DNA of 64,000 nt from Entomortierella parvispora E1425 (GCA_020891255.1 BQFW01000006.1:1550001-1614000), one strand, 5' to 3'. Positions 1,746 through 7,205 are shown, numbered from the stretch's first letter. Notes: generated from the sequence alone by a model not told the origin. Numbers and translations: made by a program.

Positions 1746-4700
1746 TCACTCGACTCCAAGACGGTCCCGCACAAACTCTGTGACAGATGGTAGTAACCTC
1801 TCTGCTGTTCCCAGAATGATGCTCAAATCCGCAGATTCCAGGCCAAGTTGCTGGAATGTAGCCTGCGGACTAAGAGGGACACTGTGTGGATGTGTTTTTG
1901 AATCATCGTCCTCGGTCCCGATGGTTGTGTTCTCTAAAGTGCCTTTGCCGTCTGATATCCGCGCCTGTCGCTCCATTTTCTCCGCCATGCCAACCCTAAA
2001 CAAAAAGTGAAGAAAGTATATAAATTGACCGCTATGACAGACAAAGCAGAAGCGACAGGCATCCAGTCTCCAGGAAATATAAAAAGAGAACTTGAACTTA
2101 CCCTTCCTTCCTGACAAACTTCACTAAGGTGAGAGCCTTCTTCACTAGACCTCTTCGCCATTGTCGGACATATCCCTCTCGCATCTCGAATGGTAGTCCA
2201 ACCGCACATCGAACAAGGTTCTCCACCATGGGCGCAGCACTCGAAACGGATTTCACAACCTTTTGCCCCTTCCATTCGATACTGGTCCAGCTGTTTTCCC
2301 GTCTTGCCCCCCAGAATCCACCTGCATCTGATCCTGTGTACCTCTGAAAACTTTGCGGAGGTATGGATCCTTGGTACAAATACCCCGTCTGGTTCGAAGC
2401 GTTCCATGCAAAGATTCTGCTAACAGACCGATCAATGACACATCGTGTTTGCTCCCGCCTGTACTCTGATCGAAGAGCGGTATACTTTGGAAATCGCTCT
2501 GTCTGTTCCACTTTACAATTAACCGTATCCACTATGGTGGTCGGAAATGGTGATGAAAGAATATGGTATAGTCGGCCATTCCGGTCCACCTTACGGTAAG
2601 GCAATCCTGTCTCTTCGTCAATCGCCTGTCCTGCTGAGCTCTGTTGTTGCTTTCCTATGCTTGGGGTGTAGATCCCTTGCAAAAATAGATCCGGCAGATA
2701 CCGATGTTGTTTTCGTGCATGACATGATTTTGCTCTGTCCTCTGGCGACAGGAATAGCGCCAAGGTATTGATCATCTGGAAAAGAAAAAAAAGCAATCAA
2801 GAACGAGAGAAGAGCGATCTTGTGTTAATACATCTGCTTGTGAGTTTAAACGAGGTATTGCAGGATCTGCTGCCTTACCATGTTCATAATGGTGATATTA
2901 TTGCCGACCACCACAGTCGACGAATTTGTCTGCAGATGCGACGTTATCGCTCTGCAAATGAACTCCCGTCCAAAAACCTGGTCGCCTTCTCGTCCGAGAG
3001 CAATATGGCTGACTTTTGCGCCTTCTATGGCCATTGCTACCGCTTCCATTGTCATGACATCCTCAACAAAAGGCACCAAATGTTCTTCTGCAAACAATTC
3101 CAGTGCCGTGTTCAACCGCTGTTGGCAAGTACCAATGAAACAAAACATCGAGAATGATCAGAAAAGTCCAGATTGAAAAAAAGACAGCCAGGTGAAGTCC
3201 TAGAAAAACGCGCTACTCACCAGCCCAGCGCGAAGTCCGCGGAGAATCTCAATTAGCACCGGCGCGTGATCGGACATTATACTGAAAAATCCCGAAAAGT
3301 TTTGTAGGTAGACCAAGGGGACCACGAAACTGAGGACGAATTTGGTTGACATGGCTAGTGTTCCAGTGGTGATTCCCAATGTTGTGCTGCCATATGAGCA
3401 ATTGTCAGCCATGGATGGATTTGCGGTATAGAGATATGATAGGGCAAGAAGACCTATGTCATATGGTATGAGCGATATAGAGTGTGAGTTGCAAAAAGAT
3501 TTGGGAGATGAAAAGATGAGATGGACACCATCGCAAGGCATTCTGTGGCACGGAGAAAGAGGGATTGTTACCTTCTTCTTGCAGGACAACCATCTTTGTC
3601 TCCACAGCATCCGTTGTCCGCATCACCTCTCCGTTCAGGATCTGCTTAGCCAACTGACTCAATGTTGACTCGTCGGGACAGCCCACCCGAGGGGTCCAGA
3701 TCTGTTTGTACGAAATGAAAGAGTGTTTGTACCACCATAACATTAAGACTGTTAATACAAGTCCACCACTGGTCGGGTCAGGTTACATCAGCGGACACAG
3801 GTACTCCAGCCCTCTCCCTCCTCCCCTCTCGGGGTCAGGGAGTTTTAAAAAAGATGAGTATGGTCCGTTGCGCCCTTACCTGTTCAATGCGGGGCCCCAC
3901 GAGATTGGACCAATACACAGACATGACCGCCAAAAAGAACCCATTTTCAGGCAGACAGTGGGAGCGATTTTCCGTCGCGGTGGGGGTACTTGGTAGCGAG
4001 ATGGACTCGAATGGCGTGCTAAGAGGCAATCCAATGGCGACAGCCTCCAAATCTCGATCCTTGTGCGGTGAGACTGGGGCCGAGGCTATTGAAAGAGTCG
4101 ACGACAAGGGTGGTGCAAGAATGGTGAACTTTGAGGCAAGTTGCTGAGTGGATGCCTTCTTCCTAGGGGCTATTATTTTAGCGCAGAAGAACAGACGACG
4201 TGAGGATCATGGTGCACAAGAATGAAAAGGAGGTCAAAACAACGACGATGACGAATAGCCTCTGCCACAGACACACACACACACAGCCTGCCAGACACAG
4301 GGCAGGAAGAACAAAAGCATGGCAAAAAAAAAAGGTCAACAATAATAGCGCACGCATCACTGCATGCATGGCGCTTCCCGCCTTCTTCCTTACCTCCACC
4401 AGATATGGGCCCACCTTCCTCCGCGGCCACGCTCTTCAGGGCCAGAAGCGCCTTCCGTCCTGCTTCTGCGCCCATGGACGTGACCACTTTGGACGATCCC
4501 GATGTGCTGGGCGCTCCCTTGCCTGCCTTTGTGATTTTACTCGACGATTTGCTGGACGAATGTCCGTCGTCGTGCTCCCACAACCCCCAAATGGTCCCAT
4601 GGCCTTTTTCTTCCTTGGGCGTGACCAAGTAAGGCTGGACAGGCTGACCTTTGTGTTTGGAGAGCGTCGAAGGGTTGGAAGAGGAGGTGGAGGCGGGGGC

Positions 4701-5267
4701 AGCTAGATCCGAAGACGCCTTCAAAGTGGTAGAGCTAGAGGATGGTCCAGGAGTTGCAGGCACGAGGTTCAGCGTTGGAGGACTCGCGATCGAAGCTGCC
4801 CTGGTATTGACTTGAAGTTGAAGCTGGGTTGCAAGCATGGCGGGAAACTGCGCCTGTGCCTGGGAGAGTGCCCCAACAGGGAGACTCTGAGGCGGTGATG
4901 TACGGCTTGTGGTAGAACTGCTCGCGACCGTGTTGGTCGTGGTCGTGGTCGTGGTCGTGGTTGTAGTCGAGGATGCGGCCGTGGTGGCCGTGGTGGTCAA
5001 CGGGCCAGTGTTCGTGGTCGTAGAGGATGGGGCTCTGGGGCTGGCAAGGGAATGCGGTGGTCCTGCAGATGAATGAGGGTCGCCTTTGACATGACTGACT
5101 CCGTTTCCGTTTCCGTTTCCGTTGCCATGGCCATTGCTCCTGTCGTGGGGAAGGCGTTCTGGGGTATCATACACTGCTGGATTGGGGACATGGTCATGTG
5201 CGGCAGCTGTAGCAGAAGCTGCATGGGCGGGTGTTGACCCTTGGGCATCCTCTCCATGACCTGACAT
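1746..5267 (-). CDS. C9orf72: C9orf72-like DENN/longin-domain protein with long low-complexity N-terminal extension (6 exons reconstructed; a further 3' exon is possible)
   Basis: Spliced translation gives FFLAVMSVYWSNLVGPRIEQIW, QILNGEVMRTT, AITSHLQTNSSTVVVG, MINTLALFLSPEDR, YLPDLFLQG, KKALTLVKFV and DLSIILGTAERLLP. These are collinear with remembered human C9orf72 segments (YWDNILGPRVRHIW, HTLNGEILRN, AISSHLQTCGCSVVVG, LCLFLTPAER, YESGLFVQG, RKALTLIKYI, DLNIIMALAEKIKP). GT-AG junctions keep the frame; exon 1 is 5267-4394 and exon 2 is 4169-3880. Confidence 0.88.
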
Positions 5268-5767: not shown

Positions 5768-7205
5768 TTAGATCAACGACACCTTAGTTCTCGCTAGCCC
5801 TCCGTGATAGTTCTTGATCGGCAGCGGTGCCCGTTGTAGCCGTCGAAATGCCTCTCGGATGTGGCGTGGCTGCAGTGGACTCTGCTCGCTCGGCGGCAGC
5901 GAGAACAGTCCTGGTATATCTTCATCCACATCCATCTCGCTCCCATCTGAGCCTTCTTCCTTGAGACCACCGTTGCCGTCGCCTGAGGCCCCGCCCTTGT
6001 CATCCTCTCCACCTCCGCCTCCTCTGTTCTTGTTCCTGGCCGCTACGACCGCTTCCCGATAGAGTCGCTGTTTCTCATCCTCTTCCTTCTTGACCTTCAG
6101 CGCCGCCTCGGTCAATGTCGTGACCATCTCAAAGGTCAAGAATCCCAAGATATCGATAATATCGTCGTTGGGCCTCATATCAATGTAGGCAGACATGTTG
6201 GCCCATTCACGAAACCTCTTTGCCTTCCTGTACGTGAAGGACGCCTGTCGACATTCACTGTAATGTTCGTATTCTTCCCTTGTCATCGCCACTGTAATCC
6301 TGTCTGCATCCTAAAGACATTCATGAATAAAAAAAGATATTAATATTAAGGCACCAAATTGCTTCCTTATGCCATGAGACACGCATCTCTTACCCTAAGA
6401 CGTTGCATCGAGTCCAAGTATGCATCCTCATCATCATCATCGTCCTCATCATCCTCTCCTGTCGTTCCCATGGCATCCGCAAAGGCATTCAGCAACTCCC
6501 AGCTCAGCTTGACTCGCATCCTCCGTGCCTTATTCACGGGCGCCACGCCCACTGCATTCTTCCCACCTGGGCCACCTCCATTGCCATCTCCAGGACCTCC
6601 CTTGCCATCATGGGCTGCTGCTGCGACGTCAATCCCAACATCATCTGCTCCTGTGCCTCCTGCTCCTTCCGACGAATCTTTGACGTTCTTGCGGACATCC
6701 TTCCAAGAGAGATAGGTTCGGAGTCGGTTAACCTTGGGTCGATCGTGGCGGATCAAAAAGATGAGATCCTCCGGTGACATGAATCGGGAGCCTCTTTTCC
6801 GCGCCTGTTGTGCTGCTAGACATATCTATGATATTGTGGAAAGTCAGAGAAAAAGACAACGACCGATTGTCAGACAGACCTTCAGCAGACGGTAAGACTC
6901 GCTCATGTCTGACAACCACTCCACAACGCGACTTGGATTTACAATTTCAATGACCTGCGACCGAACAATGTCTTCCACCAGCATTGTTGTGACTTGAATG
7001 GCATCAGAGACTTCTCCGAAAACAAACATCATTTGCTGGATTTCGCTCTGGTAGCGATACCTTGATTTGTCCTTTTCCTTGTCTTTGTCCTAATGAAATG
7101 CAGTTGCATTAGAGAGCAAGGAGTGAGTCACTTGCAGCGAATGACTATTTGTTGAAGTTGTTCCGAGTCGTGATGCGAGGAATAGATGTCAAAACATACT
7201 GCCAT
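5768..7205 (-). CDS. SPT3: SAGA complex subunit Spt3
   Basis: YQSEIQQMMFVFGEV, PEDLIFLIRHDRPKVNRLRTYLSWKDVRKN, MTREEYEHYSECRQASFTYRKAKRFREW and LQPRHIREAFRRLQ are Spt3 motifs. The first exon is 6 nt (ATG GCA, 7205-7200). Confidence 0.95.

Follow-up and report, generated by a model that had tools for sequence, protein, structure and literature searches.

The best described member of the C9orf72 family is the human protein itself, which constitutes the non-catalytic longin-DENN subunit of the C9orf72-SMCR8-WDR41 complex (6LT0 chain C, 7O2W chain A and 7MGE chain C), a GTPase-activating protein (GAP) complex for ARF and RAB GTPases. The ARF GAP activity of this complex involves the arginine finger of SMCR8 together with a contact made by W33/D34 of C9orf72, and a W33G/D34K double mutant almost abolishes the activity towards ARF1 (PMC8213707). 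The nearest other longin-DENN family, which the yeasts have kept, is formed by FNIP1/2 and yeast Lst4, the partner of folliculin/Lst7. It shares the overall fold and, in longin-DENN GAP heterodimers of the lysosome or vacuole, likewise constitutes the half without catalytic function, and Levine et al. (2013) grouped C9orf72 with FNIP/Lst4 while reporting that most fungi lack C9orf72 (PMC3570213). Its occurrence in Rhizopus was reported in 2012 (PMC3521125), Wang et al. (2023) found the C9orf72-like family PF15019 in Mucoromycotina and Mortierellomycotina (PMC10079182) and Novak Vanclova et al. (2025) mapped the three-subunit complex across eukaryotes with fungi included (PMC12290439). Here we describe a locus within 64,000 nucleotides (nt) of the genome of Entomortierella parvispora E1425 (BQFW01000006.1:1550001-1614000, hereafter referred to as the window), which we regard with high confidence as an intact single-copy C9orf72 orthologue in a Mortierellaceae fungus, encoded by a seven-exon gene of about 896 residues.

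The encoded protein has in common with human C9orf72 the family PF15019, the longin-DENN-dDENN domain order and, as judged from a full-length orthologue, the best match both in sequence and in fold. Local features that have been kept include the tryptophan and the Gly-Pro pair of the longin domain as well as two blocks, 'TSHLQT..VVVG' and 'LxLFLxPxxR'. In contrast to the human protein, with which it shares about 20% identity, the fungal protein carries about 345 extra residues at its N-terminus and a serine in place of Asp34, and its DENN domain is predicted to contain additional loops, modelled at low confidence.

The gene lies on the minus strand between positions 5267 and 1746. Reading of the minus-strand three-frame translation with scripted junctions yields seven exons separated by six introns, all of which follow the GT..AG rule. 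Concatenation of the exons gives a coding sequence of 2691 nt (896 codons) with matching phases, a TGA stop and zero internal stops. Introns 1 to 6 measure 224, 178, 118, 102, 103 and 106 nt, respectively, and open with the donors GTAAGG, GTAAGG, GTAACA, GTGAGT, GTAAGG and GTAAGT, while all acceptors end in AG. Their GC content amounts to 37-49% compared to 53% in the coding sequence. The components of the gene are given below, where L001 and L002 denote the homologous loci of Gamsiella multidivaricata and Podila humilis.

5267-4394, minus strand: exon 1; ATG at 5267, 291 codons plus one base, GTAAGG donor behind 4394
4393-4170, minus strand: intron 1; 224 nt, GTAAGG..TAATAG, phase 1, its position being shared with Gamsiella (L001) and Podila (L002)
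4169-3880, minus strand: exon 2; conserved linker predicted to be disordered, followed by the initial longin strand with W-S-N-L-V-G-P
3912-3892, minus strand: codons of W-S-N-L-V-G-P within exon 2, the counterpart of human W33-D34...G38-P39
3701-3572, minus strand: exon 3; longin domain, with AG and GT flanks kept in L001 and L002
3453-3221, minus strand: exon 4; remainder of the longin domain
3118-2879, minus strand: exon 5; first part of the central DENN domain, carrying the 'ITSHLQT..VVVG' block
2775-2102, minus strand: exon 6; remaining central DENN domain and first dDENN helices
1995-1746, minus strand: exon 7; C-terminal dDENN helices, TGA stop at 1748-1746

The original prediction, made from the sequence of the window, had assigned the span 1746-4169 to the gene. 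Both limits are exact, 1746 being the last base of the TGA stop and 4169 the base with which exon 2 opens after the TAATAG acceptor of intron 1, and the span thus comprises exons 2 to 7. It does not, however, include a start codon preceding the longin domain, as exon 1 (5267-4394) was missed. This exon is an open frame from its ATG onwards, is in phase with exon 2 and carries the only usable ATG of the gene. The stop of a neighbouring SPT3-like gene lies about 500 bp upstream of this ATG. Exon 1 encodes a low-complexity N-terminal extension rich in serine and threonine with a conserved block at its C-terminal end, and a Pfam scan assigned it to no family. Within intron 1 a short (CA)n / (TG)n microsatellite is present at window positions 4270-4287.

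To place the exons in a phylogenetic context we compared them with sequences from related fungi. A word search with exon 6, covering proteins of 123 to 392 amino acids (aa), returned nine proteins which are 74-97% identical to this exon and all of which carry PF15019. Four of the nine are named and come from Mortierellaceae (Podila humilis, Gamsiella multidivaricata, Entomortierella lignicola and Modicella reniformis), while the top match, 97% identical, stems from metagenome and run assemblies. In a tblastn comparison with the window exons, Gamsiella (L001) and Podila (L002) each possess all seven in unchanged order, with AG and GT at homologous positions. There, exon 1 is 52-67% identical and starts at the annotated gene start; exon 2 is 77-85% identical over all 96 codons, exon 3 88-90% and exon 4 82-84%. 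Exon 7 is more variable (43-66% in relatives), with a conserved 'DLSI.LG.AER.LPS.TEF' tail. Exon 1 is kept and joined to exon 2 in three related genomes or annotations. In L001 and L002 the counterpart of exon 5 is interrupted by an additional intron with in-frame stops which the window gene does not possess, and this difference may reflect either a loss in the window gene or a gain in Gamsiella and Podila. The additional intron occupies L001:6668-6763 and L002:6695-6778 and corresponds to window positions ~3011-3010, between '...EGAKV' and 'SHIALG...'.

Because exons 1 to 4 and exon 7 were as yet unsupported and the word search is blind to full-length relatives of a 224-aa query, we performed an exhaustive search of 1.84 billion representative proteins with a profile of orthologues of exons 6 and 7. 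Up to an expectation value (E) of 0.001 it yielded 74 matches, the first of which is a full-length 'hypothetical protein' of 878 aa from Mortierella sp. GBA30 (KAG0203246.1, hereafter P0010). All seven window exons map onto this direct orthologue end to end, exons 1 to 7 corresponding to its residues 1-275, 281-375, 376-418, 420-496, 497-576, 577-801 and 803-878, respectively, with two single-residue gaps which are due to split codons. P0010 is 84-95% identical to the window exons over exons 2 to 6 (93% for exon 3, 86% for exon 4 and 95% for exon 5) and 51-57% identical over exons 1 and 7. It is 18 residues shorter than the window product, the differences being mainly located in exon 1, which is of low complexity, and in the acidic loop of exon 7. 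By alignment, P0010 is an independent annotation which agrees with every proposed junction.

Other named matches of the profile search come from Mucorales, namely Halteromyces radiatus (XP_051397265.1) and Fennellomyces, and bear the NCBI name 'C9orf72-like protein family-domain-containing protein'; unnamed proteins of Rhizopus (R. stolonifer and R. delemar) were found as well. These Mucorales proteins belong to the same family, range in length from 507 to 736 aa, are about 34-36% identical to the Mortierellaceae protein and also possess N-terminal extensions. Outside the fungi, matches were obtained in a choanoflagellate, several Amoebozoa, Diphylleia, Anaeramoeba and Acrasis. Each of the ten full-length matches that were scanned carries PF15019 above the Pfam cut-off.

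An AlphaFold2 model of P0010:281-878, calculated from a 27-sequence alignment, reached a mean predicted local distance difference test score (pLDDT) of 76 and a predicted template modelling score (pTM) of 0.75. It displays a longin, a DENN and a dDENN domain within a single chain superposable on solved C9orf72 structures. When the exons are mapped onto this model, the longin domain is formed by the end of exon 2 together with exons 3 and 4, the central DENN domain by exon 5 and most of exon 6, and the dDENN helices by the end of exon 6 and by exon 7.

Among the alternatives to a single C9orf72 gene, the one to be considered first, although we deem it improbable, holds that the locus harbours two genes, one encoding the low-complexity region and part of the longin domain and a second one, starting at the methionine of exon 6, encoding the C-terminal DENN half only. 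This is how the locus is annotated in relatives. Split models are present in Gamsiella (L001:4796-7991), Podila (L002:4565-7982) and Entomortierella lignicola (L003:134-1217), the C-terminal model being in all three only a fragment of 296-304 aa whose start coincides with the conserved Met-Ile-Asn-Thr of exon 6 and which covers exons 6 and 7 only. Upstream of it, further models of 312 and 442 aa have been annotated, those of Gamsiella and Podila opening exactly at the ATG of exon 1. Yet these upstream models end differently, as they join exons 1 and 2 in Gamsiella and exons 1 to 3 in Podila before running into an intron, which resembles intron read-through. Moreover, exons 4 and 5, which rank best in conservation, are left unannotated in both genomes despite being intact and flanked by AG and GT. 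In view of upstream models that read into introns and of the omission of exons 4 and 5, we conclude that a single gene has been divided in the annotations of the relatives. The Mortierella sp. GBA30 model, in contrast, joins everything into 878 aa, a chain which is predicted to fold as one longin-DENN module like human C9orf72, while a DENN domain cut in half would hardly fold on its own. As a consequence of such split annotations in several Mortierellaceae genomes, surveys relying on these proteomes are expected to undercount or truncate C9orf72. The earlier expectation that the gene is easily missed by annotation has thereby come true, and a correct full-length gene model for the locus is what the present analysis adds.

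Assignment of this single gene to the C9orf72 family is based on profile, sequence and fold comparisons. Searched exon by exon against Pfam, with the cut-off for PF15019 at 27 bits, exon 5 matches this profile with 34.8 bits (profile positions 97-157) and exon 6 with 39.2 bits (positions 159-227). Both values lie above the cut-off and the two matches are collinear and adjoin each other on the profile. Up to E = 1, both exons match no second Pfam family. On P0010 PF15019 reaches 102 bits with no other family present; in particular, Folliculin, Avl9 and DENN families are absent from the scans of exons 5 and 6 (E = 1) and of P0010 (0.01). The C9orf72-like signal is far above chance.

Against the Protein Data Bank (PDB), human C9orf72 was the sole match of P0010 in a phmmer search (E 5e-21), the alignment covering human residues 13-290 and thus including the longin domain. 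Via P0010, exon 2 is aligned to 'YWDNILGPRVRHIW' of human C9orf72. For exon 6 alone the human protein was again the only, albeit weak, match (E 0.023), while exons 2, 3 and 4 searched singly retrieved nothing from the PDB, since a single-sequence search with so short an exon has too little power to reach a human protein of 20% identity. The single PDB match of exon 7 (E 1.9) is attributable to chance, and exon 5 retrieved only designed pentatricopeptide repeats via a short helix, which we consider an artefact. In the ESM Atlas, the query with exon 6, i.e. with a protein fragment, gave a best score of 0.79 and led to unrelated clusters, an outcome which carries little information for such a fragment.

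A Foldseek comparison of the P0010 model with the PDB placed three chains of human C9orf72 on top, 6lt0_C (E 3.8e-18, TM-score (template modelling score) 0.79 by target) being followed by 7o2w_A and 7mge_C, with TM-scores by target of 0.71-0.79 for all three. Weaker matches were chains of FNIP2/FLCN complexes (4e-7 to 6e-5), the Lst4 longin domain (2e-4), DENND1 (4e-4) and SMCR8 (5.7e-4). Hence, C9orf72 is separated from FNIP2/FLCN by a gap of 11 orders of magnitude in E, with Lst4, DENND1 and SMCR8 even further behind.

These results bear on the second alternative, namely membership of the protein in a different longin-DENN family (FNIP/Lst4, folliculin/Lst7, SMCR8, Avl9 or DENND), with a resemblance to C9orf72 that is confined to short motifs. 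The longin-DENN fold is indeed common to all of these families, which accounts for their appearance among the weaker structural matches. The Pfam scans of exon 5, exon 6 and P0010, however, know PF15019 only, the ten full-length relatives scanned all carry this family, and the PDB sequence search finds C9orf72 only, although FLCN, FNIP2, SMCR8, NPRL2/3 and DENND1 are contained in the library. For FNIP/Lst4 there is no match at the sequence level and a fold match inferior by the 11 orders of magnitude just mentioned. Moreover, in the survey from 2025, FNIP2 is described as devoid of the GP motif (PMC12290439), which the fungal protein possesses. Membership in such a family thus appears very improbable, and the best matches of P0010 in sequence and fold being C9orf72, the gene is to be regarded as a C9orf72 orthologue and not as a member of another DENN family. 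The original prediction, which had put forward a C9orf72 orthologue with longin, cDENN and dDENN regions in this order and had proposed a Pfam search and an AlphaFold superposition as checks, agrees with each of these outcomes: PF15019 is the only family, the domain order is seen on the P0010 model, this model matches the human C9orf72 chains best, and C9orf72 rather than another DENN family comes first by Pfam, PDB sequence and fold.

A conspicuous difference to the human protein concerns the contact with the GTPase. The translated motif of the window gene reads W-S-N-L-V-G-P; its tryptophan, glycine and proline are kept, while human Asp34 is replaced by serine, so that the W-D motif as such is not present. 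This W-S pair is found in all eight Mucoromycota sequences compared (the window, Gamsiella, Podila, Mortierella sp. GBA30 and four Mucorales, the latter sharing W-S-N), and the general occurrence of serine at the position of human Asp34 in the Mucoromycota copies seen is a further addition of the present analysis. Of the 20 non-fungal rows which cover the motif, 19 show W-D and one shows L-D. The W-D motif is described as almost universally conserved in the 2025 survey, which also defines the GP motif (PMC12290439). The corresponding G-P ahead of the second longin strand (human G38-P39) is encoded at 3897-3892 and is kept in almost all aligned rows. As judged from the aligned sequences, W-S is a small, lineage-wide variant without bearing on homology, which may nevertheless affect the contact with the substrate GTPase in Mucoromycota. 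Being common to Mortierellaceae and Mucorales, it must be old and stable and is therefore not a sign of decay.

Three entries of Balamuthia mandrillaris (P0034, P0094 and P0095; KAL6056995-7) match the profile of exons 6 and 7 (E 2.6e-10) and carry W-D-N..G-P. Their NCBI name 'Spindle pole body component' is probably wrong.

Across genera, the protein is 77-98% identical over exons 2 to 6. Over exons 2 to 5 the nonsynonymous divergence (dN) amounts to 0.07-0.10 with saturated synonymous divergence (dS), and the introns align at about 50% identity. This pattern points to strong purifying selection confined to the proposed exons. A pseudogene decaying towards the loss seen in most fungi, in favour of which one might cite the change of the functionally tested aspartate and the putative nature of its expression, is hardly credible in the face of an intact frame of 896 codons, of such protein identity in contrast to saturated synonymous sites and introns at about 50%, and of the age of the W-S pair.

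Several points nonetheless weigh against an intact C9orf72 orthologue encoded by a single gene. The evidence for its expression and for its six junctions is comparison between species throughout, and in three related genomes the annotation divides the locus into two genes. Exons 2, 3, 4 and 7 searched alone gave no significant match. The full-length PDB and fold tests refer to the natural orthologue P0010, which is 84-95% identical to the window product over exons 2 to 6. Finally, the aspartate of the W-D contact, whose mutation together with the tryptophan nearly abolishes ARF1 GAP activity of the human complex, is not conserved.

The gene is conserved, is under selection and encodes a protein of the C9orf72 fold. 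By analogy with the human complex, this fungal protein would contribute no catalytic residue of its own. Its longin domain would rather pair with a longin-DENN partner of the SMCR8 or folliculin type which supplies the arginine finger. Such a pair would constitute a GTPase-activating complex for small GTPases of the Arf/Rab type at the vacuole or lysosome and might, again as in the human system, feed into nutrient and autophagy signalling. In the literature covered by our search we found no paper pairing SMCR8 with Mucorales.

The N-terminal extension of about 345 residues consists of exon 1 and the first two thirds of exon 2; it is mostly of low complexity and predicted to be disordered, and includes blocks which are conserved across Mortierellaceae. 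Taken together, the exchange of aspartate for serine and this conserved extension allow for the speculation, to which we assign a rather low probability, that Mucoromycota keep a modified C9orf72 module acting on another small GTPase, or with another set of partners, than the animal complex. It is conceivable, though equally doubtful, that such a module operates without WDR41 or together with a folliculin-type longin protein. If this were true, these fungi would offer a repeat-free system, amenable to genetics, in which the ancestral function of C9orf72 could be sought.

The presence of C9orf72 in Mortierellaceae is a correct call which was already known. The original prediction had itself surmised that it may be in databases, and it is indeed published for Rhizopus and Mortierellomycotina, with NCBI naming the Mucorales proteins C9orf72-like. 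C9orf72 is the human amyotrophic lateral sclerosis/frontotemporal dementia gene and standard yeasts lack it, so that a filamentous fungus which has kept it could become a cheap model.

Upstream of the gene, at window positions 5768-6780 on the minus strand, lies the SPT3-like neighbour, whose two open reading frames are split by an intron. It shows a TFIID-18kDa match (PF02269, 41.9 bits) as well as TAFII28-like histone-fold pieces.

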